64,000 nt of DNA from Rebecca billardiae RCC1528 (Eukaryota; Protista; Haptophyta), in NCBI GenBank assembly GCA_965240325.2, contig OZ251233.1, positions 1,178,001-1,242,000 of the forward strand, in the 5' to 3' direction. The notes below the pieces were generated by a model. That model saw nothing but the letters and a program-made list of their open reading frames with translations, did no database searches and had not been told where the DNA came from. Below are positions 3,776 to 58,463 of this stretch, piece by piece; positions within the stretch are counted from its first letter, which is position 1; every line of letters starts with the position of its first letter. The translations under genes were made by a program, and so were the position numbers.

Positions 3776-4744
3776 TTACATCGACGTAATCCTACTTGAT
3801 GGGGCCCAGATGGCCACCGCGTTCTCGACGCTTGCCACGCGTCGGAAGACGATGGTTACGTACTTGTGCCTCACCTCCAGGTGCATGACCTCGAAAAGGG
3901 AGCATGCTGCTTGCTGGATCATTTCCACGATGGGCACGACGTTCTCAAAGTACTGCTTGCCTGTCCCCGACGCCTTGGCACGCTTCGCGAGCTTCTGTTG
4001 GAACGAGGCCGATGGGATGTGGATGGCGAGCAGCGTACCTGCGCGCGAATGGGCCTTGAGCACAGCCCACAGGTCGCGCTGCCGATAAGCTGGGATGTGC
4101 TCGTACGAATCGTTCATCATGATCACGTCGAAAGTCCGCTTGAGCCGGACCTTGGTGATGTCTGCCTCGTGGAAGCTCACGGTGGGTATCAAGCTGCTCG
4201 CCGCGCGCACCCAGCCAGGCACGAGCTCAACGCCGTGCACACTGCCTGTTCCGCTGATACTCTTGGCCCGGCGTGTGACGACGCCGGCAGCGCAACCCAG
4301 ATCGAGCACATCGTTCCCGCGCTTCACAAATCGTTTCAGCATGTCATTGATCTCGTCGTAGCGTGAATGGGACCAAAACGCCTCCCCGTCCGACAGCTCG
4401 GTCTGCAACTCGGCCACCTTCTTCGCGAACTTTGGCGAGCTCTCGTATTTGCTGACCTCGGCGCGGAGGAGCTCGTCGTAGTCCGCCGGCGTTGGCTCGT
4501 CCGTGAACGCACGCGAGCATTGCTGCAAGGAGATATGGGGGGAAACAAGCTGCGACGCATTGGCAGGCGCGCACGGCGAGACATGATGCCGCATCTCGAC
4601 AACTGCTGCCGGTTGGCTATCAGTCGGCGACGAGGGTAGCCTGCTCAGCACGGTGGCAAGGCTGAAGGCGACGGCGCCCACTACGAGATGCGTCGCGACG
4701 CATCCGCTCGTCACGCATCCACCTGCCGGCCCGGCGGCGACCAT
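3776..4744 (-). CDS. Class I SAM-dependent methyltransferase with N-terminal membrane anchor
   Basis: Motif I VLDLGCAAG, acidic post-I GVELV, FDVIMMNDSYEHIP; hydrophobic LVVGAVAFSLATVL near the N-terminus. ATG at 4744 chosen because the upstream part of the 509-aa ORF runs into the transposon TIR. Confidence 0.8.
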   Translation of the reverse strand: MVAAGPAGGCVTSGCVATHLVVGAVAFSLATVLSRLPSSPTDSQPAAVVEMRHHVSPCAPANASQLVSPHISLQQCSRAFTDEPTPADYDELLRAEVSKYESSPKFAKKVAELQTELSDGEAFWSHSRYDEINDMLKRFVKRGNDVLDLGCAAGVVTRRAKSISGTGSVHGVELVPGWVRAASSLIPTVSFHEADITKVRLKRTFDVIMMNDSYEHIPAYRQRDLWAVLKAHSRAGTLLAIHIPSASFQQKLAKRAKASGTGKQYFENVVPIVEMIQQAACSLFEVMHLEVRHKYVTIVFRRVASVENAVAIWAPSSRITSM

Positions 4745-5599
4745 CGCGCCCAGTGGTGCTAGCCACCCGTCCCAGAAAGCCTCTTGAGCCCGTCTTCGGC
4801 TCAGCGGGCTCAAAAACTTCGCAGCGAGGCTTTTGAGCTCAGTGCAGCCAGGTTTGGCGCTCTGCAGTGGCGGATGCCAGCTGAAACTGGGGCTTTTGGC
4901 CCAGTTTGCGATGGCACAGTGGGGGGCTTCGCGGGTCAGTAAACTGGGGAAAAGCCTCAGTTTCAGATGGCACGCGCCCACTGCGGCCGTGCCATCGCAA
5001 ACTGGGCCGAATCGCCCAGTTTGCGTGTGCACGGGGACGCACTGCGGCCGGCTGCAACTTGGCTCAGCATGGGGCAACAGGGCAGCTGTCCACAGCCCAG
5101 GCGGGGCGTCACCGCCTGCGGGCCGCCGGTGGGCAGGGCCGACGGCGTCGCAGAGCTCATGCGTGGGAGCAGCGCGTTGAGAAGGCAACCAAGGTCGAGA
5201 AGGAGGGGGCAAGGCCGGCAAGCAGCAGGGGCCACCGGTACGTTCGTACATGCCTCCACACCGGTGCACATCACCCTTGCTCGCGGCCGTGACCTGTGCT
5301 GGCACTCACCTCATCATCGCCCACCATGCAGTGGCGGCCGAGCTAAGGCGAATACTCACAGGCACCGAACACGCATCGGCGGTGCCCACTGGTGCTGGCA
5401 TGCTGTCCTCTACTTGCTGTCGGACAGCAAGCGGAGACGGCACCGCCGCAGCTGCGAGCGGGTGAGGTGCTGCTCTGCTCAGCGAGGCTGAGAGGCTGAG
5501 CACGGATCACGGATGGTGAGCCCTGGTCTCTCAACGCATCCAGGAGAGCAGTTGGTGCATAACTGTGCTCAGGCGTGCAGGACCAACCATCCGGTGCTG

Positions 5600-8466
5600 C
5601 TTCAAGCACCCGCGCCAACAGCGGCGGTACTCAACTCCACGCTGCTCATGCGGCCACACAGCTGCAGGGATGGTGCCACGGCGGGCGGCGGCGGTCGACG
5701 CAGCTGTCAGCTCGGCGGTGCGCGCCCGAGGGGCCTAGGCGACGAACGCGCCGAGCGCGGTGTGGCTGCTCGCTTCGCCCAGCGCGCGCGAGCCGCTGCC
5801 ATCGGGTGCCGCTGCGCCCGCGCCCAGCGCGGGCAGCAGCAGCTGTACTCAACTCCTCGCCGAGTGCGGCGGCAGCAGCAGGGATGGTGCCACGGCGGGC
5901 TGCGGCAGTCGCTGCAGCTGGCAGCTCGGTGGTGCGCGCCCGAGGAGCCTGGGCGCTGGGCGCACCGAGCGCGGTGACGCTGCTCGCCTCGCCCAGCGCG
6001 CTGGAGCCGCTGCCACCGGGCGCCGCTGCGCCCGCGCCCAGCCGGGGCAGCAGCAGCTGCGCTCGACTCCGCGCCGAGTGCGGCGGCAGCAGCGGGGATG
6101 GTGCCACGGCGGGCGGCGGCGGTCGCTGGAGCTGGCAGCTCGGTGGTGCCTGCCCGATGGGCCTGGGCGCTGGGCGCACCGAGCGCGGTGACGCTGCTCG
6201 CCTCGCCCAACGCGCTCGAGCCGCTGCCATCGGGCGCTGCGCTGCCCGCGCCCAGCTTGGGCAGCAGCAGCTGCGCTCGACTCCGCGCCGAGTGCGGCGG
6301 CAGCAGCAGGGATGGTGCCACGGCGGGCGGCGGCGGTCGCTGCAGCTGGCAGCTCGGTGGTGCCTGCCCGATGGGCCTGGGCGCTGGGCGCACCGAGCGC
6401 GGTGACGCTGCTCGCCTCGCCCAACGCGCTCGAGCCGCTGCCATCGGGCGCTGCGCTGCCCGCGCCCAGCTTGGGCAGCAGCAGCTGCGCTCGACTCCGC
6501 GCCGAGTGCGGCGGCAGCAGCAGGGATGGTGACACGGCGGGCTGCGGCGGTCGCTGGAGCTGGCAGCTCGGTGGTGTGCGCCCGAGGAGCCTGGGCGCTG
6601 GGCGCACCGAGCGCGGTGACGCTGCTCGCCTCGCCCAGCGCGCTGGAGCCGCTGCCACCGGGCGCCGCTGCGCCCGCGCCCAGCCGGGGCAGCAGCAGCT
6701 GCGCTCGACTCCGCGCCGCGTGCGGCGGCAGCAGCAGGGATGGTGCCACGGCGGGCGGCGGCGGTCGCTGCAGCTGAAAGCTCGTTGGTGCCTGCCCGAT
6801 GGGCCTGGGCGCTGGGCGCACCGAGCGCGGTGACGCTGCTCGCCTCGCCCAGCGCGCTCGAGCCGCTGTCACCAGGCGCTGCTGCGCCCGCGCCCAGCCG
6901 GGGCAGCTGCAGCTGCGCTCGACTCCGCGCCGAGTGCGGCGGCAGCAGCAGGGATGGTGCCACGGCGGGCGGTGGCAGTCGCTGGAGCTGGCAGCTCGGT
7001 GGTGCGCGCCCGAGGAGCCTGGGCGCTGGGCGCACCGAGCGCGGTGACGCTGCTCGCCTCGCCCAACGCGCTGGAGCCGCTGCCATCGGGCGCTGCGCTG
7101 CCCGCGCCCAGCTTGGGCAGCAGCAGCTGCGCTCGACTCCGCGCCGAGTGCGGCGGTAGCAGCAGGGATGGTGCCACGGCGGGCGGCGGCGGTCGCTGGA
7201 GCTGGCAGCTCGGTGGTGCGCGCCCGAGGAGCCTGGGCGCTGGGCGCACCGAGCGCGGTGACGCTGCTCGCCTCGCCCAGCGCGCTCGAGCCGCTGCCAC
7301 CGGGCGCTGCTGCGCCCGCGCCCAGCCGGGGCAGCAGCAGCTGCGCTCGACTCCGCGCCGCGTGCGGCGGCAGCAGCAGGGATGGTGCCACGGCGGGCGG
7401 CGGCGGTCGCTGCAGCTGAAAGCTCGTTGGTGCCTGCCCGATGGGCCTGGGCGCTGGGCGCACCGAGCGCGGTGACACTGCTCGCCTCGCCCAACGCGCT
7501 GGAGCCGCTGCCATCGGGCGCTGCGCTGCCCGCGCCCAGCTTGGGCAGCAGCAGCTGCGCTCGACTCCGCGCCGAGTGCGGCGGCAGCAGCAGGGATGGT
7601 GCCACGGCGGGCTGTGGCAGTCGCTGGAGCTGGCAGCTCGGTGGTGCGCGCCCGAGGAGCCTGGGCGCTGGGCGCACCGAGCGCGGTGACGCTGCTCGCC
7701 TCGCCCAGCGCGCTCGAGCCGCTGCCATCGGGCGCTGCTGCGCCCGCGCCCAGCTTGGGCAGCAGCAGCTGCGCTCGACTCCGCGCCGAGTGCGGCGGCA
7801 GCAGCGGGGATGGTGCCACGGCGGGCTGTGGCAGGTGCTGGAGCTGGCAGCTCGGTGGTGCGCGCCCGAGGAGCCTGGGCGCTGGGCGCACCGAGCGCGG
7901 TGACGCTGCTCGCCTCGCCCAGCGCGCTCGAGCCGCTGCCATCGGGCGCTGCTGCGCCCGCGCCCAGCCGGGGCAGCAGCAGCTGCGCTCAACTCCGCGC
8001 CGCGTGCGGCAGCAGCAGCAGGGATGGTGCCACGTCTGGCGGCGGCGGTCGCTGGAGCTCAAAGCCCGGCGGTGCGCGCCCGAGGGGGCTAGGCATTTGG
8101 CGCACCGAGCGCGGTGACGCCGCTCGCTTCCCGCAGCGCGCTGGAGCCGCTGCCATCCGATGCTGCTGCGCCTGCGCCCCGCTTGGGCAGCAGCAGCTGC
8201 GCTCGACTTCCCACCGCGTGCGGCGGCAGCAGCGGGGATGGTGCCACGGCGGCCGGCGGCGGTCGCTGGAGCTGACACCCCGGCGGTTCGTGCTTCAGGG
8301 GCCTGGGCGGTGGACGCACTGAGCGCGGTGACGCTGCTCGCCTCGCCCACCGCGCTCGAGCCGCTGCCATCTGATGCTGCTGCACCGCCCGGGCAGCTGC
8401 AGACTCTGCGCTCGACTCCACGCCGCGTGCCGTGTCGTGGCAGGCAGCAGCAGCAGCAGGCTGGTG
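5600..8466 (+). repeat. Tandem array of 214-bp GC-rich units, about 13 copies (left arm)
   Basis: GATGGTG(C/A)CACG recurs with ATG at 5670, 5884, 6098, 6312, 6526, 6740, 6954, 7168, 7382, 7596, 7810, 8024, 8238 (exact 214 period); edge units degenerate. Confidence 0.95.
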
Positions 8467-8885
8467 ATTAACTGCTGCTGCTCAGCAGATTACTGCGACT
8501 GCTGCTCGGTCGCTGCGTGTGAAGTAGATGAGCGAGTCGCTTGTGCCGGGCCGCAGGCAGCAGCCCAGCCGTGCCGATGCCTCGGATGGCGTAGTCAGTG
8601 GTCGTACTCGGGGCGGAGTAGTGCCGTGCCCGTAGGTGATCCGGACTCGCGAGTCGCGGAGTGCCGAGCACAGCCCGGCCGGTATTGGCGGATATGGACG
8701 ACTGCTATATCGTCGTCGCGCGATACATCGGCATCATCAGCATCATCATCAGCATCGAATACCGTAGTCTGCTCCGAATATGACGGCGCGAATTTGAGCG
8801 CAGCTAAGAATTTATAATAAGTATAGTAGCGCAGATGACGCCAGACGAATTCATCACTCTGCTCCGATGACCGAGCGGCGCGCAT

Positions 8886-8905
8886 TATATATATATATAT
8901 ATATA
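8886..8905. repeat. (TA)n microsatellite in the foldback spacer
   Basis: tatatatatatatatatata. Confidence 0.9.
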
Positions 8906-9279
8906 GCTGCTGCGGCTGCGCATGCAGTGCCATGAGCCCTCTATACCAGTTGTCGGTCTGCTGCATATATATATAGTACATTATGACCAACTCCTCGGAG
9001 ATCGGGTCCGCGTAACCGGATCGCCCGAATATCCCCGATCGGACGGCGGGACGCGACTCCGGAGTCGGAGACCGGACGGTGATGACACAGTACTCAGTAG
9101 CCGCTCGGCTCGCGGCTCTGACCGGCTGCCCCGCCCCCGCAATAACCGACCGCGCGCGGTCGTTTACCGGCGGGTTAACGCGGCGGCCGGCCGCGCTGCG
9201 AGGCTGCGACTGCTGACAGCGAGTCAGCGGGTCACTCATCTAGTTCATCATACGCATCGACCGAGCAGTCGCGACGGTG

Positions 9280-11890
9280 CTGATCTGAGCTGCTGCAGCT
9301 GCTCCGGCTGGGCGCAGACAGCGCAGCGCCGGGTGGCAGCGACTCACCAGCGCGCTGGGCGAGGCGAGCAGCGTCACCGCGCTCGGTGCGCCCAGCGCCC
9401 AGGCTCCTCGGGCGCGCACCACCGAGCTGCCAGCTCCAGCGACCGCCGCCGCCCGCCGTGTCACCATCCCTGCTGCTGCCGCCGCACTCGGCGCGGAGTC
9501 GAGCGCAGCTGCTGCTGCCCAAGCTGGGCGCGGGCGCAGCAGCGCCCGATGGCAGCGGCTCGAGCGCGCTGGGCGAGGCGAGCAGCGTCACCGCGCTCGG
9601 TGCGCCCAGCGCCCAGGCTCCTCGGGCGCGCACCACCGAGCTGCCAGCTCCAGCGACTGCCACAGCCCGCCGTGGCACCATCCCTGCTGCTGCCGCCGCA
9701 CTCGGCGCGGAGTCGAGCGCAGCTGCAGCTGCCCCGGCTGGGCGCGGGCGCAGCAGCGCCTGGTGACAGCGGCTCGAGCGCGCTGGGCGAGGCGAGCAGC
9801 GTCACCGCGCTCGGTGCGCCCAGCGCCCAGGCCCATCGGGCAGGCACCAACGAGCTTTCAGCTGCAGCGACCGCCGCCGCCCGCCGTGGCACCATCCCTG
9901 CTGCTGCCGCCGCACGCGGCGCGGAGTCGAGCGCAGCTGCTGCTGCCCCGGCTGGGCGCGGGCGCAGCGGCGCCTGGTGACAGCGGCTCGAGCGCGCTGG
10001 GCGAGGCGAGCAGCGTCACCGCGCTCGGTGCGCCCAGCGCCCAGGCCCATCGGGCAGGCACCAACGAGCTTTCAGCTGCAGCGACCGCCGCCGCCCGCCG
10101 TGGCACCATCCCTGCTGCTGCCGCCGCACGCGGCGCGGAGTCGAGCGCAGCTGCTGCTGCCCCGGCTGGGCGCGGGCGCAGCAGCGCCCGATGGCAGCGG
10201 CTCCAGCGCGTTGGGCGAGGCGAGCAGCGTCACCGCGCTCGGTGCGCCCAGCGCCCAGGCTCCTCGGGCGCGCACCACCGAGCTGCCAGCTCCAGCGACC
10301 GCCGCCGCCCGCCGTGGCACCATCCCTGCTGCTGCCGCCGCACTCGGCGCGGAGTCGAGCGCAGCTGCTGCTGCCCAAGCTGGGCGCGGGCGCAGCCGCG
10401 CCCGGTGGCAGCGGCTCGAGCGCGCTGGGCGAGGCGAGCAGCGTCACCGCGCTCGGTGCGCCCAGCGCCCAGGCTCCTCGGGCGCACACCACCGAGCTGC
10501 CAGCTCCAGCGACCGCCGCCGCCCGCCGTGGCACCATCCCTGCTGCTGCCGCCGCACTCGGCGCGGAGTCGAGCGCAGCTGCTGCTGCCCAAGCTGGGCG
10601 CGGGCAGCGCAGCGCCCGATGGCAGCGGCTCCAGCGCGTTGGGCGAGGCGAGCAGCGTCACCGCGCTCGGTGCGCCCAGCGCCCAGGCTCCTCGGGCGCG
10701 CACCACCGAGCTGCCAGCTCCAGCGACCGCCGCCGCCCGCCGTGTCACCATCCCTGCTGCTGCCGCCGCACTCGGCGCGGAGTCGAGCGCAGCTGCTGCT
10801 GCCCAAGCTGGGCGCGGGCAGCGCAGCGCCCGATGGCAGCGGCTCCAGCGCGTTGGGCGAGGCGAGCAGCGTCACCGCGCTCGGTGCGCCCAGCGCCCAG
10901 GCTCCTCGGGCGCGCACCACCGAGCTGCCAGCTCCAGCGACCGCCGCCGCCCGCCGTGTCACCATCCCTGCTGCTGCCGCCGCACTCGGCGCGGAGTCGA
11001 GCGCAGCTGCTGCTGCCCAAGCTGGGCGCGGGCGCAGCGGCGCCCGGTGGCAGCGGCTCCAGCGCGTTGGGCGAGGCGAGCAGCGTCACCGCGCTCGGTG
11101 CGCCCAGCGCCCAGGCTCCTCGGGCGCACACCACCGAGCTGCCAGCTCCAGCGACCGCCGCCGCCCGCCGTGGCACCATCCCCGCTGCTGCCGCCGCACT
11201 CGGCGCGGAGTCGAGCGCAGCTGCTGCTGCCCCGGCTGGGCGCGGGCGCAGCAGCGCCCGATGGCAGCGGCTCCAGCGCGTTGGGCGAGGCGAGCAGCGT
11301 CACCGCGCTCGGTGCGCCCAGCGCCCAGGCTCCTCGGGCGCGCACCACCGAGCTGCCAGCTCCAGCGACCGCCGCCGCCCGCCGTGTCACCATCCCTGCT
11401 GCTGCCGCCGCACTCGGCGCGGAGTCGAGCGCAGCTGCTGCTGCCCAAGCTGGGCGCGGGCGCAGCGGCGCCCGGTGGCAGCGGCTCCAGCGCGTTGGGC
11501 GAGGCGAGCAGCGTCACCGCGCTCGGTGCGCCCAGCGCCCAGGCTCCTCGGGCGCACACCACCGAGCTGCCAGCTCCAGCGACCGCCGCCGCCCGCCGTG
11601 GCACCATCCCCGCTGCTGCCGCCGCACTCGGCGCGGAGTCGAGCGCAGCTGCTGCTGCCCCGGCTGGGCGCGGGCGCAGCAGCGCCCGATGGCAGCGGCT
11701 CGCGCGCGCTGGGCGAAGCGAGCAGCCACACCGCGCTCGGCGCGTTCGTCGCCTAGGCCCCTCGGGCGCGCACCGCCGAGCTGACAGCTGCGTCGACCGC
11801 CGCCGCCCGCCGTGGCACCATCCCTGCAGCTGTGTGGCCGCATGAGCAGCGTGGAGTTGAGTACCGCCGCTGTTGGCGCGGGTGCTTGAA
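9280..11890 (-). repeat. Inverted tandem array of the same 214-bp unit, about 12 copies (right arm)
   Basis: Minus-strand unit ATG at 9467, 9681, 9895, 10109, 10323, 10537, 10751, 10965, 11179, 11393, 11607, 11821. Confidence 0.95.
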
Positions 11891-12827
11891 GCAGCACCGG
11901 ATGGTTGGTCCTGCACGCCTGAGCACAGTTATGCACCAACTGCTCTCCTGGATGCGTTGAGAGACCAGGGCTCACCATCCGTGATCCGTGCTCAGCCTCT
12001 CAGCCTCGCTGAGCAGAGCAGCACCTCACCCGCTCGCAGCTGCGGCGGTGCCGTCTCCGCTTGCTGTCCGACAGCAAGTAGAGGACAGCATGCCAGCACC
12101 AGTGGGCACCGCCGATGCGTGTTCGGTGCCTGTGAGTATTCGCCTTAGCTCGGCCGCCACTGCATGGTGGGCGATGATGAGGTGAGTGCCAGCACAGGTC
12201 ACGGCCGCGAGCAAGGGTGATGTGCACCGGTGTGGAGGCATGTACGAACGTACCGGTGGCCCCTGCTGCTTGCCGGCCTTGCCCCCTCCTTCTCGACCTT
12301 GGTTGCCTTCTCAACGCGCCGCTCCCACGCATGAGCTCTGCGACGCCGTCGGCCCTGCCCACCGGCGGCCCGCAGGCGGTGACGCCCCGCCTGGGCTGTG
12401 GACAGCTGCCCCATGCTGAGCCAAGTTGCAGCCGGCCGCAGTGCGTCCCCGTGCACACGCAAACTGGGCGATTCGGCCCAGTTTGCGATGGCACGGCCGC
12501 AGTGGGCGCGTGCCATCTGAAACTGAGGCTTTTCCCCAGTTTACTGACCCGCGAAGCCCCCCACTGTGCCATCGCAAACTGGGCCAAAAGCCCCAGTTTC
12601 AGCTGGCATCCGCCACTGCAGAGCGCCAGACCTTATTGCTCAGTGACTATGAAATGGACTGGCAACGAATAGCTGCGGGTATTTTTCAATACCAAGGGCC
12701 TTGAATAGACTCAGGGTGGTCAACCTCGAAACGATATGAGTCCTTGGTATAAGTGGGCCAGTCATTTAATTCGTCCTTTTGATGCCGCTTTTTATTCCCG
12801 CCGAGTCGTTAAATCATAGTAAATGAG

Positions 12828-13908: not shown

Positions 13909-14538
13909 TCACTGCATGAATTGCATGTCATCGCCTGGATCCCGGCGCAGCGCCATGAGCTCTTGGGCGTAGCGCACAAGATGATCGCCGAGGCCACCCT
14001 GGCACGCATCCTGGATCGAATCGTAGGCACTGCGCGCAGGAGGCTGCCATCCTGGCCCCCTGAACTGCCAGTGGCAGAGACGCCCGGTCGACGACCCTGG
14101 CACCAGCACCACGCCAAAACGGTTGCTGCAGCCAGGGTCGTCGACCGACGCACCACGAACGGTGTAGGAGCACAGATGGTGCTGGAGAGCGAGCGCATCC
14201 ATGAGGCACTCGTCATGCGTGAACCCAGCGGCTAGCCGGATCTGCATGATACGGGCAGATTTGCAACACGGCAAAGGAGCACACGGGCGTTCGGAGTAGG
14301 TGTCACCGCGAAGGAAGAGCGCATACTCGACGGCCTCGTCTGGACTGGCAGCGAGCGCGGCTGACAGCGTGATGGCGTCAAAGCCCCGGCGGCGATCACG
14401 ACCGCCAACACCGGCATCGTCGTCCGTGGCGTAGCCGCCGGAGGCCTCGGCGATTTCAAACGGGTAGATCGACCAAACCGAGCTCAGAACCGGAGTGTAC
14501 CGAGCTAAGCGGATGTACCATGGTACACTTTGGTACAT
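13909..14538 (-). pseudogene. Possible degenerate coding fragment, unknown function
   Basis: 209-aa frame with protein-like composition but no plausible ATG start (begins in the TGGTAC repeat) and no recognisable family. Confidence 0.25.
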
Positions 14539-14580
14539 AATTGGTACACTATTGGTACACTATTGGTACAAATGGTACCA
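14515..14580. promoter_or_regulatory. Helically phased TGGTAC minisatellite directly upstream of a start codon
   Basis: TGGTAC at 14521, 14531, 14542, 14553, 14564, 14573; further GTAC at 14497 and 14515. The repeat is certain, the regulatory role is inferred. Confidence 0.5.
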
Positions 14581-16822: not shown

Positions 16823-18793
16823 TAGGTGGGTCCCTGGCGATTTTCCAGCGGTCTTTTTAACATTTACCGGGTTTTCTGGCCTGATTTCTTTTCGCGGGGC
16901 GCGGCTCGGGAAAATCGCCGGGCCGCCGCCGAGGTCCCGATCTGAACGCTCCCGACGATGTCGGAGCGCCTCTCCGAGCGCGACCGAGCCGCCGTGTGTC
17001 GGGTAGACCACAGCCAACACCTATCGCGCGCTCCAGCGCTTTGCGCGTGCTCACGGATGGGATCCCGGATCCGTGCTCACACATCCCCCGCCTGGCACGT
17101 GCCCGCATGTTTGACTCTCGCCCGGCTAGACGCGTACAGACAACTTGAATCGATCGGCGGGTGTTCGACCCGTGCCTTCGAGCAGGGCCACTTTTCGCTA
17201 CAGGCGGGTCAGGTGACGGGAGGCATGGGCCACCATCAGGCATGGGCATGCTCTTGACGCTCCCGCCATCTTGAGCAGCTCAACGCACCGTGAAGGTGAC
17301 ATTTGGGCTGTGCGCAAGCTGCTCGTGAGAACGCACGACAGCCAGCCCCGGGCTCTCGGGGAGCCATGTAAGCGATTGGCGACTTCCGAGAGGGCGTGTT
17401 TGGTGGGGGTTGGTACCAATCATCGACCAGCAGGCCTAGGATGGGTGCACTGAGGACTTGGGATGCTGAGAAGCCGCCGCGATGTGCGGCGAGCACGCCG
17501 ACTTGCCATCCGTGTGCACGATCCAGCGCCAGGAAGATCAGCAGGGCCTTTGACAGCGGCAGCAGGCGCTCAGCGATCCATCCCTATGCCGAGTGTGGGC
17601 ATAGTATGCGGTGCTCGAGGGTGGTCGCAGGATATGGGTCCATTCTTGACAGAACGCGGTCGCGTTGACAGGCGCGGGTGCCACCCCACGCTGTTGCTCC
17701 TGCCATTGGGTGGTCCCACTCGTTCCGCTTGTGGTCTGCGAAGACTCGTACTCAGCAACTCTACGGCTAGGCGTAGTAGACCCCTCAGACGCATGTCTGA
17801 TGATTGCCCGGCACGTTCTCGTCGTCACGTTGGGTGTACTTGAGCGAGCGGAAGCCGCAACGTGATGGCTAGGCCAGCAGCTCAACAATGACTCAACCAT
17901 CTGACGTCTCGCCGGCCAACTGGCTGAGTGCTCTCAGCCTAGCAGCAGCGTCGGTGAACCTATCGTATTGCTGCCTGGCGAGAAGATGGTAGGAGGCATC
18001 GTCGGCGGCATGGGCTGCAGCTGCGGTAGTCATGGACTGGTGGCGGCCTCACGCGGGTGGGCATACGACGACCGGTGACACGCGGAGTACGAGCACGGAA
18101 GCCGCCGAACGCGGCAAGCTCCGGCGGTGGCGTTGGCTGATAGTCCAGCCTCGACGGCGGAGGGCTCCCGTGTGACGACGGTGGCATGCTCGGTGGCGGG
18201 CGATGGTGTGTGCCTCGGCACGCAGCCCGCCACAAACACTGCCACTCGCAGGCAGTCCGCGGTTGCGGCCCGGGTTGCCTGTGTCCGCGTCGCTCGGCGT
18301 CTATTCGATGACCCAACAAACGTACCCACATATCGGAACGAATTTGAATATAAAGTGAACCGCATCCACGGTCAATATAAAGTGGGTAACACTCATACTA
18401 TATACGGGTAAGTGGCTATATATGAAGTGGGTAATATGCTCGATCTTGCTGTAGTTTGTTGGAGGTATCAGCGCACAGCATAGAGCCCCACTCTTTGCTT
18501 CATAAAATGGTTCGGTCGGGTGTCAACGGTTGTCAATAAGTGATTCCGATCGCATGTCGCCATCTAGCCACCATAACCATGAAGTAACGCTTCGCAAAAT
18601 CTCTATGTGACACTACTGGCGCGGCGCGCGCGCGCTCGGCCGTGCGACGGCACGCGGAGTAGGTTTTGAGGTCGAAACTTTTGCTCCGCCCCGATGGGAC
18701 GCATTTATAGCGTCGATTCTGGGTGAGAGACAAAATCTAGGACGTCATTCTGAGTGCGCCAGAATATCGCCCCAGTTGGGAGGGACCCACCTA
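16823..18793. mobile_element. Non-autonomous DNA transposon, 13-bp TIR, 7-bp TSD
   Basis: TAGGTGGGTCCCT (16823-16835) / AGGGACCCACCTA (18781-18793); TSD TCGGAGG at 16816-16822 and 18794-18800; subterminal GGCGAT(T/A)TTC match after a short indel; no intact ORF. Confidence 0.8.
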
Positions 18794-18839: not shown

Positions 18840-19673
18840 TCACCATTGCTCTGGGACGAATCTGCAATCCGGCCAGTTCTGCGCGTCGAGCAGCGAGTCG
18901 CTAGCATCGCTTGCTCTTGGCTGCACCCGCGCCGCACGATCTGCTGCGGACGCCGAGTGGTTGCCTGTTGCAGGCGGGCGCTTGCTAGGGTGGTCATTCG
19001 CACGCGGGTCTGCAAGCGTGTTCATCTGCGCAACACGTTGAAAGCGGCAGCCGCGGTAGCCAATCCAGCGCGCCATGCGGTTGAAAGTGAAGGCCGAGAA
19101 GTCCTCCACGGCCAAGTCCAGCACGGCGTCGCGTGGCAATCGCTGCCGAATGCTCTCCAAGCGCTGGCGTGAGATTGCAATTCGGTCATGCGACCGCTTT
19201 TCATCATTGGCGTTGGGCCGCTTGTTGCCAAAGGTAGACTTCGCCTGCGCCCCCTCGTCGCGCCGATAGCTCACGATCAGCTTGGCGCGCGGGAACAGGG
19301 AGAAGAAGTCGGCGTGATCCGGGTAGCGGATCTCCTTGAAGCCGCGAATGACTGCCGGCTCGCCTGGCTCTGGGCGGATGCTTGCGTGCAGCATCGCGCA
19401 CGTTGCGCCCGCCACCTGGCGGCGGTCCGGACGCGTGAACCACGCGTAATTTGGGTGTGCAGGGTGCTGCAGTGCGTCGAACACGGCGTAGAAGGCGCCA
19501 CCATTCTCTCCGCTGAGATAAGCGCCCGGCAGCTCGTTCACCATGCGCAGGACGGTCGTGCTGCCCGTGCGGCCGCCAATCGAGAGGATGAAGAGCCAGA
19601 AGACGTCGTGGCAGTGCGACGCGCGCTGGGCATCGAGCAAAGAGGTCTTGTTGCGCCCCGCGGCGGCGGGCAT
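18840..19673 (-). CDS. Sulfotransferase family protein (P-loop fold)
   Basis: 5'-PSB loop LFILSIGGRTGSTT, then GEN, GFKEIR and LFPRAKLIVSYRRD (3'-PB region). Confidence 0.8.
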   Translation of the reverse strand: MPAAAGRNKTSLLDAQRASHCHDVFWLFILSIGGRTGSTTVLRMVNELPGAYLSGENGGAFYAVFDALQHPAHPNYAWFTRPDRRQVAGATCAMLHASIRPEPGEPAVIRGFKEIRYPDHADFFSLFPRAKLIVSYRRDEGAQAKSTFGNKRPNANDEKRSHDRIAISRQRLESIRQRLPRDAVLDLAVEDFSAFTFNRMARWIGYRGCRFQRVAQMNTLADPRANDHPSKRPPATGNHSASAADRAARVQPRASDASDSLLDAQNWPDCRFVPEQW

Positions 19674-19815
19674 GGGCGAGGCGCTTCGTCGGCGGTCGTC
19701 CGGGCGGGCAACGGACGAGCGAGGCGCCACCGCCAGCGTGCTACAAAAGCACTTTCCGTCTCCGCATTCAACCGATGCAGCAAATGCAGCATGGCTACCG
19801 GGTTCGGGCACACTG

Positions 19816-21027
19816 ATGTGCACTAACGGCCGGCTGTTCGCTCTCGTATGGCTCGCCGCGGGCGTGGTGCGCGACCTCGCTGGCGCGGCCTCGGCGGTGC
19901 AGGGGCCCTCAGCCTCCCCCACGGGCGAGCACGACGCTGCCCCGGCCGTGATGCACACCGATGCGGAGATCGAGTCCCTGGCGGAGGAGGTGGCGGAATT
20001 GGAAGCCCTTGATCGCAGGGCGCGCCATTGGCGAAGATTCGCCGACGAGATGCGCTGCGCTGGGCTGCAGGGCGCGGCCCGAGCGGCGTGCGCGCAGCAT
20101 GCGCGCATCACCCTCCTGCGCGAGCGTCGCGCGGAGCTTGCTGGCGTGGAGGAGCGGTACCGGCGCGAGCGAGCGCGCGCGGGCGCCGCGAGCTGTATGC
20201 GCAACGGCACGGGCCCCTCGGGGGGCTTCTGCTTCAACTCGAAGACCACCAAGTCGGAGGGCAACAACTTCTGCCTCTCCCGGCCCTACGCCACGGGCCT
20301 CGGCGAGCTCTTTGGCGCCGGCGTGCGCGTGCTCGACCTCGGGTGCGGCGTGGGCAGCTACGGCCGTTTTTTCAAAAAGCACTTTGGCGCCAGCATCACG
20401 TGGACGGGTCTCGACGGGAGCGAGCGCGTTGAGGAGCTCACACATGGGCGCGTGCGCTTCGCCGACCTGGCGGAAGGGCTGCCCATAGACGTACGCCGCG
20501 CGGCCTGGGACTGGGTCATGAGCATCGAGGTCGCCGAGCATGTGCCGCCGGCCCACGAGGCCAAGTTCGTGCACAACCTCGTGGCGCTGCGGCCCTCGCG
20601 TGGGCTTGTGCTCACCTGGGCGCGCGTCGGCCAGCCGGGCACCAACCACGTGAACTGCCAGCCCGACAGCTACGTGATCTGCGTCATGGCCAAGCTTGGC
20701 TATGCGGCCGACATGAACGCGACCGCGCACCTCCGCCGCCTCGGACGCCTCTCCGTCGACGACAAGGCCGCGCCCTGCAAGTGGCTCTCCTTCACCACTC
20801 TCGTCTTCCGCCCCGCGGGGGCCGCGGCCGCGTCGCAGCTGGGCGCAGGCCTCGTTCCCGTGCCCCGGACGGCCACGCCCGGTTGGGTGGCCGCCTACGA
20901 CGCTCTGATGACGCGCGAGTGCCCGCGCTATGATCCACGGTTCAGCTGCGTGAAGAAGCGCGAGTTGCCTGATGGCCGGATACACCAGCTCCTTCGCGAT
21001 GTCCAGGCTTCGCAATTGCAACCTTGA
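19816..21027 (+). CDS. Secretory-pathway class I SAM-dependent methyltransferase
   Basis: Signal/anchor LFALVWLAAGVV; VLDLGCGVGSYG, GLDGS, WVMSIEVAEHVP, LVLTWARVGQPGTNHVNCQ. Confidence 0.88.
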   Translation: MCTNGRLFALVWLAAGVVRDLAGAASAVQGPSASPTGEHDAAPAVMHTDAEIESLAEEVAELEALDRRARHWRRFADEMRCAGLQGAARAACAQHARITLLRERRAELAGVEERYRRERARAGAASCMRNGTGPSGGFCFNSKTTKSEGNNFCLSRPYATGLGELFGAGVRVLDLGCGVGSYGRFFKKHFGASITWTGLDGSERVEELTHGRVRFADLAEGLPIDVRRAAWDWVMSIEVAEHVPPAHEAKFVHNLVALRPSRGLVLTWARVGQPGTNHVNCQPDSYVICVMAKLGYAADMNATAHLRRLGRLSVDDKAAPCKWLSFTTLVFRPAGAAAASQLGAGLVPVPRTATPGWVAAYDALMTRECPRYDPRFSCVKKRELPDGRIHQLLRDVQASQLQP

Positions 21028-24294: not shown

Positions 24295-25062
24295 CTACGT
24301 TGCGCCCTGCACCCCCTCATACGGGTTGGGTGAGCCGGGCGGGTAGTGCAGGCACCGCTGTGCAAAGAGGGCCATCGTGCCCGCGTGGTGCACGCAGCGC
24401 GGCAAACGAGTGAACGTCGTCTTCTCGTGGACGGGGAAGACGGTCTCAAAGACATCCTGCTCGCCATTCGCGAACGGCATGAAGTCGCCAAGCCGCGCCT
24501 TGTCCGTCATCACGCGGTAGATGTAATGGTTCGGGATCATCCAGTAAGTAAACGCATGGAAGCCATCATGCGGCCGCACGGAGCGCTCGTGCCCGGCCAC
24601 AAAGTATAGTCGGCGCCTGTAGAGCTCGAGCATCTGCGGGCGTGGGTCCTCTTTGAAGCACGCGTCGCTGTCGATCGCGAGCACGCCGTCGTACTCCGTC
24701 AGGTTCCACGTGTGCAGCTTGAGGACGGTGCAGTTCCCGTCAGGGCGGTTCTGTGTCTTGTCGTTCAAGGGCCACATGCGCGACGCGTCGCGCTTTCGTC
24801 GCTTCATGAAGTTCAGGCGCTCGGTCGGCATCACGATGACGCGATCCCAGTACCGCGTCCAGTTCGCCATGTATTTGGCGTTGTCAAAGCCGGCAACAAC
24901 GAGCACCTTCTCGACGCGAATGCCTGGCGGGCCCGGGGGCGCGAGCGTGGTCATCAGCGACTGGCCCAGGATGTTGGCGCGGTGAATCTGGTTGATGGGC
25001 GGGTTGTTACGCTTGTCTTTGGCCGCGCACAGGCAGCACATGATCGCCAACCGCGGCACCAT
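24295..25062 (-). CDS. Glycosyltransferase family 8 (glycogenin-like) protein
   Basis: TVLKLHTWNLTEYDGVLAIDSD (DxD motif) and GEQDVF; start codon uncertain. Confidence 0.8.
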   Translation of the reverse strand: MVPRLAIMCCLCAAKDKRNNPPINQIHRANILGQSLMTTLAPPGPPGIRVEKVLVVAGFDNAKYMANWTRYWDRVIVMPTERLNFMKRRKRDASRMWPLNDKTQNRPDGNCTVLKLHTWNLTEYDGVLAIDSDACFKEDPRPQMLELYRRRLYFVAGHERSVRPHDGFHAFTYWMIPNHYIYRVMTDKARLGDFMPFANGEQDVFETVFPVHEKTTFTRLPRCVHHAGTMALFAQRCLHYPPGSPNPYEGVQGAT

Positions 25063-25158
25063 CCCAGCACGTCCCAGCCTTCGCGCACGATGGCGCCCGC
25101 CGGTGGAGCCGGCCCGGGCGGGGGGGTTGGCGGGTTGCCCAAGGAATTCGTCTGTGCA

Positions 25159-26106
25159 ATGATGGAGGCCGCGCCGGCCGAGCAGGCGGACACGGCCATG
25201 CCACTGGCGGCCGCGCCGGCGGGAGAGCAAGAGCCAACGCTGTCGAAGAGAGCACGCAAGCGCGCAGCAAAACAAGCTCTGCGCGAGGAGCAACGCCGGG
25301 CGAAGAAGGCGCTGCGGAAGGAGCGCAAGCAGGCGGAGCGCGAGGAGCGGCAGGCGCGGGCACCCGCCGCAGCTGCGCCGGCAGGGTCCCCGAGGCAGGC
25401 GTCGATGGGTACAGCGCGGCTTCCAAAGGAGGTGTGGCGCTCGCGTATCCGCGAAGCGCTCGAGCGCACGGCCGAGCTGCCCGCCATCGCCATCGACCTG
25501 TCGCACGGCGCTCTGATGCGAGAGCACGAGCGCAAGAGCCTCGCCAGCCAGGTGATGTTTGCTTACGGCGTAAACAAGCGGGCGGAGCGGCCGCTGCCGT
25601 ACCACCTGACGTCGTACGAGGGCGAGCTCGCGGAGAACTTCAGGCGCATCTCGGGCTTCGAGCGCTGGCCGGTCGGCGTGCACACGAGGCCATACTGGGA
25701 GGTCTTCGAGCCGAGCTCAGTCGTGGTCCTCTCGGCCGAGTCGCCCAACGTGCTGCACACGCTCTCGCCCGGCAAGGTGTACGTCGTCGGCGGCATCGTC
25801 GACCGCAATCGGCACAAGGGCCTGCTGCACGCCGCGGCGTCCGAGCACGGCCTGGCCAGCGCGCGGCTGCCGCTCGACGAGCTCTCGACCATGCCCACAC
25901 GGAAGGTGCTCGCTGTGAATCACGTGGTTGAGATGCTGATCCGCTTCCACCAGTCGGGCTCGTGGCCGGACGCGATCCAGAGCACGGTGCCGCAGCGCAA
26001 GGGGCTGGTGTTGAAGCAGGGCGAGGGGGACGCGAAGCAGGGCGAGGGCGAGGTGGAGGCGGAGGGGACGGCGGAAGAGCAGGGCGAGGCTGAGGCGGCG
26101 GACTAG
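25159..26106 (+). CDS. TRM10: tRNA (guanine-N1)-9 methyltransferase Trm10
   Basis: LSKRARKR basic N-region, IAIDLS, KSLASQVMFAYGVN, LSAESPNVL, VYVVGGIVDRNRHKG, ARLPL, RKVLAVNHV. Alternative ATG at 25090. Confidence 0.93.
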   Translation: MMEAAPAEQADTAMPLAAAPAGEQEPTLSKRARKRAAKQALREEQRRAKKALRKERKQAEREERQARAPAAAAPAGSPRQASMGTARLPKEVWRSRIREALERTAELPAIAIDLSHGALMREHERKSLASQVMFAYGVNKRAERPLPYHLTSYEGELAENFRRISGFERWPVGVHTRPYWEVFEPSSVVVLSAESPNVLHTLSPGKVYVVGGIVDRNRHKGLLHAAASEHGLASARLPLDELSTMPTRKVLAVNHVVEMLIRFHQSGSWPDAIQSTVPQRKGLVLKQGEGDAKQGEGEVEAEGTAEEQGEAEAAD

Positions 26107-34757: not shown

Positions 34758-36302
34758 TCAGGGTCCGGGTACCTCCCGGTCCGGGCAGCGCTCGACTGCA
34801 TGCGGCATCACGTGCGTCACCCACACGTCACGCAGCGCGCCCGACGCGCCCCCGAACCGGGCGTCTGTCGCCAGCTGGTGGCCGAGCACGAGCAAGCGCG
34901 TCGCGCGCGCGCGATCGGCCGGCGGGAAGAGGTGGTGCGTTTCGGCAGACCACGGGCGGGCGGCGGCCACCACGCACGACGCGGCGGCGTGCCGCGGGTC
35001 CGCCTCGAGCACGCGCCGCGCCAGCGCGAGCGGCGTCGGCGCGTCGGCTGCGCCATCGCCGGCGCGCAGATCGGCGCCGGCGCGCAGCTCGGCGAGCGCC
35101 TCCGCCCCCGTCATCTCGCCCACGTGGTGCAGCGCCGTGCTCCACCGCGCAGCGCGCCGCAGCCAGAGCGACAGAGCCGTCGGGCCGCACGCACCCTCTA
35201 GCTCCTCCGCAAGCCTTGAGCGACTCCGCAGGTCCGAGGCCGCCCACGCGAGCCCCGCGCCGTGGCGGCACAGCAGCCGCGCGAGCTCGAACGCGCGCGC
35301 GGCCTCGCCCGCTCGGTCGCGCGGCCCCTCGGCCAGGTGCGTCTCCACGCTGACCAGCCCAACGATCAGCAGCGGCGTGCTCTCGTCCTGACGTCGGACG
35401 GCCTCGACGTCCGCGCCCGGCGCGCGGCGCAGAAGCGCGCGCGCGCCCTCGAGCGCGAGCGTCTCGCATGCGCAGTGCAGGGGCGTCTCGCCACGCGCGT
35501 CGCAGCGCTCGTGGTCCGCGTGCGCGCCGAGCAGCAGCTGCACGAGCGCCGCGCTCGCGCGCTCGCCGCCCCTGCACGCCACGTGAAGCGTTGACTGTCG
35601 GAGCAAATCAGTCTGATTCACGTCGGCGCCCGCGCCGAGCAGGATCGAGACGAATTCGCATTGCTCCCGCCCCCCGCCCGCGGCGCCCTGCCTGCACGCG
35701 ACGAGCAAGGCGGTCTGCCCGTCCATGTCGGTGCGGTCGACGTCGGCGCGCGCCGCGAGCAGCAGCCGCGCGTGCGCACACCGCGGGACGGTGCTCGCCG
35801 CAGCGACGTGCAGAGCGGTCATCTCGGCTCCGTCCGCGAGGTTCACGTCCGCGCCCGCGGCGAGCAGCGCGCGCACGACGTCGGCGTCGGTCGCGCCGCA
35901 CGCGCACGCGGCGTGCAGCGCGCTGCAGCCCCACTGGTCGGTGTGCTGCACGTCCGCGCGTGCGGCGAGCAGCCGCCGCACGCCCCGCGCCTGTCCCCCG
36001 GGCAGGAACCCGACGCCTGTCGACGACGCCAGCCACAGCAGCACGGTTCGTCCTTGGTCGTCCGCGCGATTCAGGTCCGCTCCTGCCTCGAGCAGGAGCT
36101 GCGCGAGCGCGCCGTGCGTGCACGGAGGGGAGGACGACTCGCACCGACAGACGTGGCCCTGGAAGCACGCGAGAAGCGCGCGTGTCCTCGTCCTGCGCGA
36201 CGAGCAGCTCGACGCGGGCAGGCGCGCGTCCGCGAGGAGGAGCTCGCGTACGCGCGGGAGATCGTCCAAGAAGCACGCGTCGTCGAGCGCGTCCTCGTTC
36301 AT
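34758..36302 (-). CDS. Ankyrin repeat protein with C-terminal WSxxTHHLFP motif
   Basis: Several GxTxLHxAC..LL.AGADVN repeats; C-terminal WSAETHHLFP..LL.G helix motif. ATG at 36302 preferred. Confidence 0.85.
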   Translation of the reverse strand: MNEDALDDACFLDDLPRVRELLLADARLPASSCSSRRTRTRALLACFQGHVCRCESSSPPCTHGALAQLLLEAGADLNRADDQGRTVLLWLASSTGVGFLPGGQARGVRRLLAARADVQHTDQWGCSALHAACACGATDADVVRALLAAGADVNLADGAEMTALHVAAASTVPRCAHARLLLAARADVDRTDMDGQTALLVACRQGAAGGGREQCEFVSILLGAGADVNQTDLLRQSTLHVACRGGERASAALVQLLLGAHADHERCDARGETPLHCACETLALEGARALLRRAPGADVEAVRRQDESTPLLIVGLVSVETHLAEGPRDRAGEAARAFELARLLCRHGAGLAWAASDLRSRSRLAEELEGACGPTALSLWLRRAARWSTALHHVGEMTGAEALAELRAGADLRAGDGAADAPTPLALARRVLEADPRHAAASCVVAAARPWSAETHHLFPPADRARATRLLVLGHQLATDARFGGASGALRDVWVTHVMPHAVERCPDREVPGP

Positions 36303-36613
36303 GCGCAGGCGTCGGGGGCTTTCCAGGCCGCGCGCTGCCACGCCCGTCCAAGGACGGCGGAGGCAATGCCGGTTCCTCAGCAGCTCAGCGGGTGAGTTGA
36401 CGTGTCTGAAATCTGATGAAAAATAATCTGCGCTGACGACGAAATCTTGTCGTGTCGCTCGTCCTCCAACGTGCAGTCGTGCGTGCACTGGTTGCATCCA
36501 GTCCATCCACGGTGCGCGCCCGTGCCCGCCCGGAACCGTCCACTACGACCGGGAACGTGAAAGTGTCACAGCCTGTGCTAAGGAGCTAGAGAGCGACATC
36601 GTCAGACTCATCA

Positions 36614-37603: not shown

Positions 37604-38314
37604 GCCGCGGCGCGCGTGCCGTGCCCTCGTGAATGGCACGGATACGCCCGCTCGCGCCTCGCGCCTCGCGAGCTCCGCGGCACGTCGTCGCCACGTTGCG
37701 CTGTACTAGTAGTGGGAGGCGCCACGGGCCAGCGCCACAATGGCGGCCGCGAAAAGCTGGCATAAATGCCCCTTTCTCGCGTTGAGGGCGCCATCCTTAC
37801 GCTTGGGGCAATATGCCAGCCAGTGACCACTCTGGGAGGCGGCATTATTGCTTAGTCGAAATCTAATTTCAGACCCCGACTCTGTGGCTCTGCCCTGAGT
37901 CAATGTTTGGCATAATCCATCACAACACCGCCGCCGCTGCTGTTGTCTGTTGACCATCTTCATCGTAGCCAACGCTGACCGTCTCACAGTGCCGTGAATT
38001 GTAATGATGACGACAGTGCTGCTGCCATCCTCCCAGCCGACAAACGGTGCCGGAGAGTGCGCACGTGCCCGGAGCAACCGAGAGTGCACGTCAACGTGCC
38101 CGGAGCAACCGGCGCCCATGCCAGCCAGCCACGAGCCAGGCAGCTGCGCCCGAGCCCGCTCGGACTAGTTCGGAGTGACTTAACGGTGGCGCGGGATTTA
38201 CGTAGTGAGGTCAGGCCATGATGCCGCCGATCTGATGCGGCTGTATTACTGTGCGCCGCTCGAGGCTGAGTTGCGGTACGCGTAGGCGGCCTCGCGCGAG
38301 CTCAGGCTCGTCGG

Positions 38315-54200: not shown

Positions 54201-55319
54201 CAAGGGGAGTCAGGGTACAGCACGTCCAGTTGGGCTGCAGCTGGAGCTTGGGTCCAAAAGCTTCCCGCGGCGCAGCGGCACTCGCCGCCGCCGCCGCCGT
54301 CGAGGGGCGGTTGTGGCGCGCACGGCGTGAGCCGCTGCGGGCGCTGAGGTGCGCGCGACGGCGGCGCGCCCGGCGGCGCTGCTGTAGGAGGCCACTGCCC
54401 TCCTCTCTGCCCCGCGCGCTTCGCTCGTCGTCGCCGTCTCCGCGCCTGCGACTCAGCGCGCACGCGAGCGCGGCACCGCCCGGCAGCCGGGGCAATCTCT
54501 GCCGTGACTGCGCATGTGCGTCGCGACCTGGTCGGCCCAGCGCGCGAGGCGCGTGCGGGCGAGGTAGGGCCAGTATGGGCGCGCGCCATGCCGCCTCAAG
54601 TAAGCCCATCAGAGCGTACAACAGGGAACTGAGCACGTGTGTCTGGTTGGCCGCTCAGTGGACTGTGTTCAAGCAATGCACGGGCCATCGTCGAGGCGAT
54701 CTCGAGGCACTCAGTCAAAACGTCAGTTCAGCGCGCAGACGACCTGGGTGAGAGTCACTGACAATGTATGACTCGCATGATCACAAAAGGCTCTGCAACT
54801 ATCGCGTCTGTACGCCTACTGCCTCGATCGTGCACACTGACGCCTGCGCTTGGGTGCCGCATTGTTTGTCAACGTTGTCGACAGAGGTGCAAGGCCCGCG
54901 ACATGCCCACCGGCGCAAGGTCGAGGCGGCATGGCGCGCGCCCATACTGGCCCTACCTCGCCCGCACGCGCCTCGCGCGCTGGGCCGACCAGGTCGCGAC
55001 GCACATGCGCAGTCACGGCAGAGATTGCCCCGGCTGCCGGGCGGTGCCGCGCTCGCGTGCGCGCTGAGTCGCAGGCGCGGAGACGGCGACGACGAGCGAA
55101 GCGCGCGGGGCAGAGAGGAGGGCAGTGGCCTCCTACAGCAGCGCCGCCGGGCGCGCCGCCGTCGCGCGCACCTCAGCGCCCGCAGCGGCTCACGCCGTGC
55201 GCGCCACAACCGCCCCTCGACGGCGGCGGCGGCGGCGAGTGCCGCTGCGCCGCGGGAAGCTTTTGGACCCAAGCTCCAGCTGCAGCCCAACTGGACGTGC
55301 TGTACCCTGACTCCCCTTG
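54201..55319. mobile_element. 1.1-kb foldback element, 397-bp TIRs, 7-bp TSD
   Basis: Arms 54201-54597 and 54923-55319 are reverse complements (CAAGGGGAGTCAGG...CCTGACTCCCCTTG); 325-bp spacer; TSD TACTCAC at 54194-54200 and 55320-55326. Confidence 0.93.
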
Positions 55320-55320
55320 T

Positions 55321-55364
55321 ACTCACCTCGCTTTGCGAGGTGAGTTTACTCACCTCGCTTTGCG
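55321..55364. repeat. Hairpin plus direct duplication at the foldback right junction
   Basis: ACTCACCTCGC-TTT-GCGAGGTGAGT (55321-55345) followed by a second TACTCACCTCGCTTTGCG. Confidence 0.85.
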
Positions 55365-56974: not shown

Positions 56975-58294
56975 TCATCCCGCGCGCATCATCATCCTCC
57001 ACACGATGTTGGCCGCGCGCTCGCTTGGCATCTGCCCGTCGGAGGTGCTGTCCGCGACGAGCGCCTCGCACACTGGGGCGAGCGCGCACAGCTGGGCTGC
57101 GCGAGCAGCGCGCGCGCTACCAGGCCCGCGCACGTCGAACGCCAGCGGCGCGACCGTGTCGGCGAGGCGCGCGGGCGTGCACCGACTGAACAGCACCTCT
57201 GGCAGCGGCGCGCGCTCGCCTCCGGCCGCGGGCTCGGGTGGGTCGCGCTCGGGCGGCACGCCGTCGAGCTCGAGCAGCAGGTTGGGGATGGACACGTGGT
57301 GCACACGCGCGAGCGCGCGCGCCGCGAGCTCTGTCAGCGCGGACGCGCGGTAGAAGGCCACGGTCGGGCGCGCGTGCAGCGCGCACTCGAGGGCGGCGGT
57401 GCCTGACGCGCACACGGCGACGTCGCTCGCGCCTAGCGCGGCTCGGAGCGCGTGGGGCGCTGCGTTGGTGGTGACGACGACGCGCGCGTCGTCCGACGGC
57501 ACGCCGAGCTCGCGCACGCGCGCGCGCACGAGCGCGTCCGTCGTCGGCGGCGCCACGAAGAGCGCCTGGAACCGGTGGCCGCTTTTGCGCAGCGCGCCGA
57601 GCGTGCGCGGCAGCAGCTCCATCGAGCGCGCCGCCTCTGCGGGGCGCGATCCGGGCAGGAGGGCGAGGACGGTCGCGTCGGGGGCGAGGCCCAGGCTCGC
57701 GCGGGCGAGGGCCCGCTCGGACGCGTCCACGCCGCGCGAGCCGCCCGCCTCGAGGAACGCCTCCACGGCCGGGTGCCCGACCACCGAAGTGTTCTGCACG
57801 CCCGCCGCACGCCAGTACTCCGCTTCGAACGGCAGCAGGAGCAGCAGCTGGTCGGCGAGCTCGGCGAAGCGCCGCGCGCCTCGCAGGCCGTCGCGGTAGG
57901 CCCATGCCGAGGGCGCCACGTACTGCACGAGTGGGGGCGTCGCCGCGCCGAGCCGCGCGCGCACGGCGCGCATGAGCCGCGCGTTGAAGCCCTTTGAATC
58001 GATGCACACGACGCAGTCAGGCCGGCGGTGGGCGATGTCGTCCGCCGTCTGCGACAGCCGCCACGCGAGGCGGGGGAGATGCGGCACGAGCTCGAGGAGG
58101 CCCATGACCGAGAGATCGCTCATTGGATAGAGGGAGCTCAGCCCGTGCGAGCACATCTGCTCGCCGCCGACGCCCGCAAACCTGACGGGCGACGGCGCCG
58201 CCACCCGAGCGAGCGAGCGCATGAGCCGCGCGCCGATCATGTCGCCCGACGCCTCGCCCGCCACGAGGTAGACGAGGCGGCTGGCGCCCCGCAT
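56975..58294 (-). CDS. lpxB: Lipid-A-disaccharide synthase (GT19)
   Basis: LVAGEASGD, GVGGEQM, LSVMGL.E, IDSKGFN, YVAPSAWAYR, LLPFE, VGHP, LLPGSR, ASGTAALE. Confidence 0.93.
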   Translation of the reverse strand: MRGASRLVYLVAGEASGDMIGARLMRSLARVAAPSPVRFAGVGGEQMCSHGLSSLYPMSDLSVMGLLELVPHLPRLAWRLSQTADDIAHRRPDCVVCIDSKGFNARLMRAVRARLGAATPPLVQYVAPSAWAYRDGLRGARRFAELADQLLLLLPFEAEYWRAAGVQNTSVVGHPAVEAFLEAGGSRGVDASERALARASLGLAPDATVLALLPGSRPAEAARSMELLPRTLGALRKSGHRFQALFVAPPTTDALVRARVRELGVPSDDARVVVTTNAAPHALRAALGASDVAVCASGTAALECALHARPTVAFYRASALTELAARALARVHHVSIPNLLLELDGVPPERDPPEPAAGGERAPLPEVLFSRCTPARLADTVAPLAFDVRGPGSARAARAAQLCALAPVCEALVADSTSDGQMPSERAANIVWRMMMRAG

Positions 58295-58463
58295 GCGCCT
58301 CGCGTGCCAGCCCCCCACTCTTTTGCCAACTCCACCAAAGCCCGCTCGCGCCCGGCAGCCATCGTGCGGCCTGCTCGCGGCCGATCGGCAGCGTCGAACC
58401 GCGGAGCGTGCGTGCGGTCCAGCTCACGGTTGAGGTCTTTGCCGCCCCCAGTGGAGAGCAGCG

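Follow-up and report, generated by a model that had tools for sequence, protein, structure and literature searches.

The 64,000-nucleotide stretch of contig OZ251233.1 of the haptophyte Rebecca billardiae RCC1528 analyzed here (GenBank assembly GCA_965240325.2, positions 1,178,001 to 1,242,000 of the forward strand; hereafter, the window) contains a 7.8-kb non-coding element, at window positions 4845-12638, that is probably a single insertion of a cut-and-paste DNA transposon of the foldback type, non-autonomous in nature. The element is built of two long inverted arms filled with satellite repeats, carries a cluster of short motifs near each end, is enclosed flush on both sides by the 7-bp direct repeat CTCAGTG and lies close to the start of a methyltransferase gene. 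The structure, the duplication and the lack of any Pfam match among its open reading frames (ORFs) all support the description given in a first-pass annotation of the same DNA, made from the letters alone, which had proposed a non-autonomous, satellite-armed foldback element bounded by terminal inverted repeats (TIRs). Elements of this type are already known from Drosophila, where they are represented by Foldback (FB), Galileo and Tetris, and full-text literature searches combining foldback elements with haptophytes, or foldback transposon with algae, found no paper.

The boundaries of the element can be read from two features. On the one hand, an inverted-repeat search recovers the pairs 4850-5076 / 12407-12633 (100%) and 5080-8144 / 9347-12411 (95% complementary), bearing out the 7.8-kb near-palindrome of the first-pass annotation and assigning the bulk of the element to arms of approximately 3.6 kb apiece. 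On the other hand, the CA...TG termini and the CTCAGTG duplication named in that annotation can both be read directly at the ends, where the outer bases are CAGCC... at the start and ...TATTG at the end. By chance, when 11 symmetric offsets are allowed, a 7-bp direct repeat lying flush is expected for approximately 0.35% of random position pairs in the window. The duplication can also be read as 8 bp (GCTCAGTG) when its terminal G is taken from the element, but the 7-bp reading is preferred because it keeps the ends symmetric and agrees with two other elements of the window, described below. Arms that make up most of the element, tandem repeats that fill these arms and a duplication around the whole are the features expected of a foldback element, and their coordinates are collected in Table 1.

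Table 1. Features of the foldback element and of its left flank, in window positions.
Feature	Positions	Strand	Basis or remark
S-adenosylmethionine (SAM)-dependent methyltransferase gene	3779..4744	-	Methyltransf_25 domain, E = 4.9e-10, residues 333-415 of ORF 3776-5305
Left target-site duplication, CTCAGTG	4838..4844		Identical to 12639-12645, flush with element end
Left unique arm, 814 bp, starts CAGCCAGGTT	4845..5658	+	Arm-to-arm pairing
Subterminal motifs clustered as three palindromic pairs (AAACTGGG, 5-7 nt, CYCAGTTT), ~56 bp apart	4878..5032		Mirror cluster at 12451-12605
Left 214-bp satellite array, ~12.7 units, 78% G+C	5659..8386	+	Tandem-repeat search and unit comparison
Decayed partial 214-bp unit (8391-8453), then weakly paired inner tail of left arm	8387..8555		63-bp match to unit; inner-edge alignment
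Unpaired centre, AT-richer, TA microsatellites, no coding recognized	8556..9214		ORF and pairing inspection
Right 214-bp satellite array, ~11.9 units, inverted with respect to left array	9292..11832	-	Tandem-repeat search and unit comparison
Right unique arm, 806 bp; begins CAATAAGGTC when read inward from its tip	11833..12638	-	Arm-to-arm pairing
Right target-site duplication, CTCAGTG	12639..12645		Flush with element end

The outer, unique parts of the two arms are nearly identical, and most of the differences between them are concentrated at the very tips. Aligned from the ends inward, the left and right unique arms match at 223/227 positions, are interrupted by an 8-bp indel (5072-5079) that accounts for their difference in length, and then match at 578/579 positions. 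Four of the 10 outermost bases differ (4847-4849 and 4854), leaving these bases 60% identical, whereas inward of the tips a single mismatch (5171) is seen over approximately 800 bp, for an interior identity of 99.8%. The near-identity of the roughly 820-bp TIRs reported in the first-pass annotation hence holds, but their lengths are 814 and 806 bp, their tips are imperfect and an indel separates them. The combination of identical interiors and divergent tips fits either an exchange between arms that stops short of the edge of homology or a family-wide difference between left and right ends. The first-pass annotation had offered recent insertion or ongoing arm-to-arm conversion. The observations are compatible with conversion, or with constraint, on the unique part of the arms, given the contrast between their interiors and their outer 10 bases and the reshuffling of the arrays that they enclose.

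The satellite arrays tell a different story from the unique arms. Tandem Repeats Finder, at period 214, delimits 12.7 copies with 91% matches at 5659-8383 and 11.9 copies with 95% matches at 9292-11832, in opposite orientations, in agreement with the 12-13 inverted units per arm of the first-pass annotation. The two arrays are related, yet their units do not follow a mirror order: unit 6 of the left array is the same as units 9 and 10 of the right one (99-100%), its unit 7 matches right units 5 and 6, and its unit 10 is the same as right unit 11. Furthermore, adjacent identical units are also found inside a single arm. As judged from these unit comparisons, the arrays have been rearranged by duplication and loss after the last common state of the arms. 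Comparison of the 214-bp unit with the unique arm, with the centre and with the remainder of the window gave no significant match. Between the arrays lies a stretch of 905 bp (8387-9291), the inner edges of which pair weakly (8472 to approximately 8555 with 9298 to approximately 9215, limits set by eye from the alignment), so that the truly unpaired centre is reduced to approximately 650 bp. A Pfam scan of the ORFs in arms, arrays and centre matched no family, and the ORFs of the centre resemble chance frames. The first-pass annotation was thus right to call the spacer non-coding, but its estimate of approximately 800 bp has to be replaced by these two lengths.

Both ends of the element also carry a cluster of short motifs that sets them apart from the remainder of its sequence. 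The 18-mer CCCAGTTTGCGATGGCAC has eight matches in the window, allowing up to three mismatches, against 0.07 expected, and all eight fall inside the two arms. This motif and its variants are confined to the 190 bp next to either tip, where they form pairs with reverse copies, and the earliest forward copy occupies positions +56 to +73 from the tip. The tandem 214-bp units are devoid of it. The layout looks like that of the transposase-binding sites of many cut-and-paste elements, an analogy that would make these motifs candidate binding sites.

The distribution of these motifs and the position of the duplication bear on whether the structure ever moved as a unit. A local palindrome could have arisen when template switching or break repair produced an inverted duplication, or when a satellite-bearing element with a single arm inserted twice, head to head. 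Such an origin would be in keeping with arrays lacking mirror order, with tips that are unlike each other and with a centre made up of unrelated sequence. It is nonetheless improbable, in that a flush 7-bp duplication encloses the entire structure and the subterminal motif clusters are restricted to its two outer ends.

Long-read libraries are also known to produce near-palindromes as artefacts, which raises the question of whether the structure could derive from a chimeric foldback long read. The arms, however, differ by an 8-bp indel, by their number of units and by the order of their arrays, they flank a centre of some 650 bp that does not pair, and the flanks hold a target duplication. Together, these features make an artefact very unlikely. 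Outside data point in the same direction. In a comparison using a query of 6,000 letters, a single public run, composed of short contigs, contained one fifth of the sampled words; its contigs match positions 4883-5502 of the left arm without a single difference, and part of the centre (8858-9049) is present as well. A version of 5473-5694 that diverges by 5%, and contigs that depart from the element at 5463 and 5504, are likewise found in this run and suggest that further members of the family exist. The window itself holds a single copy of this foldback family, and it is the outside run that provides a variant copy of the arm.

Several observations do weigh against interpreting the structure as an inserted foldback transposon. 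No transposase has been identified in the element or among the ORFs of the window scanned against Pfam, and the divergence of the tips, where four of 10 outer bases differ between ends, is unusual for an active element. In addition, the outside run consists of contigs only, which cannot span the palindrome, and no junction is crossed among the contigs listed. Lastly, no second copy of the family that could confirm the ends was retrieved from protein, metagenome, viral or prokaryote collections: the longest ORF of the unique arm found no match in a protein search, exact scans of metagenome and viral contigs with a 25-mer from the subterminal region returned nothing, and neither did exact scans of metagenome, viral and prokaryote genome contigs with a 32-mer from the satellite core.

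In the model that best accommodates these features, a transposase encoded by another element of the genome would act in trans, binding the 18-bp motifs that lie, in palindromic pairs, within 190 bp of either tip. It would then pair the two CA...TG ends, excise the element and insert it where the two target strands had been cut 7 bp apart; repair of this stagger would yield the CTCAGTG duplication. Under this model, the 214-bp arrays would constitute cargo, free to expand, contract and reshuffle through unequal exchange, while exchange between arms, or constraint, would maintain the near-identity of their unique parts.

Which transposase superfamily might be responsible for mobilizing the element can be addressed by comparison with known systems. 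Elements of the hAT superfamily generate 8-bp duplications and display YARNG tips, and were considered and rejected: the duplication is 7 bp, and not 8, in all three elements of the window when their ends are kept symmetric, and the tips CAGCC and CAATA of the foldback element are unlike YARNG. Drosophila FB elements, which generate 9-bp duplications and are grouped with MULE/NOF, share with Tetris and with the haptophyte element an organization in which nearly the whole element consists of two inverted arms filled with tandem repeats. The element described here departs from FB in its 7-bp duplication and in its approximately 810-bp unique outer arm, which bears a distinct cluster of motifs. 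Tetris-type elements are described as being able to seed satellite DNA (PMC4079207).

The first-pass annotation had assigned the element to the Galileo group of the P superfamily, which would imply mobilization by a P-type transposase combining THAP and DDE domains. Like Galileo elements of Drosophila, the haptophyte element has a 7-bp target duplication, within the 7-8 bp that characterize P and Galileo elements, CA...TG ends, long TIRs that hold tandem repeats and, as in most Galileo copies, no coding sequence. The TIRs of Galileo can likewise contain tandem repeats (PMC4168063), and a 9-kb Galileo copy of D. willistoni is made up solely of TIRs with units of approximately 140 bp (PMC4168063). 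The parallel may extend to the subterminal region, in that Galileo presents an 18-bp THAP footprint at +63 to +80 (PMC3688188), which the first 18-bp motif, at +56 to +73, resembles; in Galileo this is a site of protein binding 60-80 bp from the tip (PMC3688188), whereas the motif reported here is a candidate identified in the sequence. Foldback shape and duplication length are not, however, specific to any superfamily, and a duplication of 7 bp is equally Dada-like. Galileo shows a preference for the palindromic target GTANTAC (PMC4168063), which none of the three duplications in the window (CTCAGTG, TACTCAC and TCGGAGG) fits. Unlike those of Galileo, moreover, the tandem units are free of the subterminal motif, the host is a haptophyte alga instead of a fly, and neither the element nor the ORFs scanned across the window yield a THAP or P-type transposase. 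The assignment to Galileo made in the first-pass annotation is regarded as doubtful.

A second option is that the foldback families with 7-bp duplications are non-autonomous partners of Dada-type transposons whose DDE transposase includes a built-in 3'-5' exonuclease. Dada elements, according to Kojima and Jurka (2013), generate 6-7-bp duplications, into which the 7 bp observed here would fit, occur in protists and algae, and carry the exonuclease in some of their members (PMC3706591). The known families, however, are described as lacking TIRs and as inserting into genes for transfer RNA (tRNA) or small nuclear RNA (snRNA), whereas the foldback element is bounded by long TIRs and lies upstream of a gene, within DNA that is AT-richer. 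None of the three insertion sites in the window holds a tRNA or snRNA: ARAGORN detects no tRNA, either across the window or in the empty site as rebuilt, and the sole snRNA gene is that of the spliceosomal U4 RNA, at 37793-37921 (+ strand; Rfam RF00015, 72.6 bits). Nor does a Dada-type DDE transposase figure among the ORFs of the window scanned against Pfam. A partnership with Dada-type transposons is a tentative proposal. In our overall estimate, a P-like and a Dada-like transposase are about equally likely sources of mobility, the latter slightly ahead and neither of them probable, with the remainder falling to another or an undescribed lineage.

The window contains two further elements flanked by 7-bp duplications. 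A second foldback element, at 54201-55319, spans 1,119 bp and consists of perfect 397-bp arms around a 325-bp centre; its tips are CAAGGGG and its duplication reads TACTCAC. The third, a 1,971-bp element at 16823-18793, has a 13-bp TIR (TAGGTGGGTCCCT) and the duplication TCGGAGG; its ORFs show no coding remnant. Neither has extended similarity to the giant element or to the other. The hexamer CCAGTT, which has a background frequency of 11 per 53 kb, occurs at +26 in the second element and at +17 at one end of the third. In its extended form, CCAGTTKG, it has 12 matches where 1.9 would be expected for the whole window, and nine of them fall no more than 190 bp from a tip of one of the three elements (4901-5023, 12460-12582, 18772-18779, 54226-54233 and 55287-55294). 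Given that the hexamer was picked after the sequences had been seen, the shared core is suggestive only, and as such it might point to a single transposase lineage serving several unrelated non-autonomous families. With their common 7-bp duplication, YA...TR tips and CCAGTT(T/G)G core, the three families, unrelated in sequence, may conceivably depend on one lineage, be it an exonuclease-bearing Dada-type transposase or an undescribed superfamily, although we hold this with low confidence. Should the lineage be Dada, these would be, with respect to the 2013 description, the first foldback Dada derivatives bearing TIRs and lacking specificity for small-RNA genes, and satellites would have become mobile in haptophytes by a route peculiar to that group. 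Next to the second element, its right flank contains the 18-bp sequence TACTCACCTCGCTTTGCG twice in direct orientation, at 55320-55337 and 55347-55364. This repeat begins with the duplicated target, forms a strong hairpin (ACTCACCTCGC-TTT-GCGAGGTGAGT) and could possibly represent a footprint or a local duplication.

In flies, foldback elements with repetitive arms are a known source of satellites and of inversions. A copy with defined tips, a target duplication and a candidate binding motif provides a handle for finding the responsible transposase, and its clear delimitation offers the same for the origin and spread of the 214-bp satellite. The insertion of a 7.8-kb hairpin-forming sequence so close to a gene, in turn, makes a possible effect on that gene amenable to testing.

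The gene in question is located in the left flank of the element, in which the Methyltransf_25 domain of the minus-strand ORF 3776-5305 falls. Proceeding from the junction, the earliest in-frame methionine of this reading frame is at 4744 and is followed by a hydrophobic stretch, which places the element approximately 100 bp upstream of the likely start of the gene. The homologues of the flanking protein are methyltransferases, with 33-41% identity. An empty-site allele, sought through this protein, gave no exact record, the best relatives being those same 33-41% identical proteins, which places this genome outside the collections searched. The ORF at 3779-4744 (-) and another at 19543-21027 (+) match the same SAM-methyltransferase Pfam families and are possibly paralogues. 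Both have an element with a 7-bp duplication upstream, at approximately 100 bp for the former and approximately 740 bp for the latter. At the insertion site of the giant element, the sequence AGCTCAGTG recalls the A box of tRNA genes, but a tRNA-like target was discarded on the ARAGORN results for the rebuilt site and the window.

The host DNA is very GC-rich, with a G+C content of approximately 0.70 over the window, and the three rebuilt insertion sites (4844, 16822 and 54200) are AT-richer, at 0.40-0.62. Two of the three fold into hairpins of unusual stability, with values reached by 1.5% and 2.6% of G+C-matched random sites, against 38% for the site of the giant element. To the right of the foldback element, an AT-richer stretch at 14521-14578 holds 5.5 copies of an 11-bp tandem unit (TGGTACACAAT). 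Elsewhere, the window carries ordinary host genes, among them those for a tRNA m1G methyltransferase-like protein (24712-26106, +), an ankyrin-repeat protein (34758-36506, -) and an LpxB-like lipid-A-disaccharide synthase (56975-58318, -).

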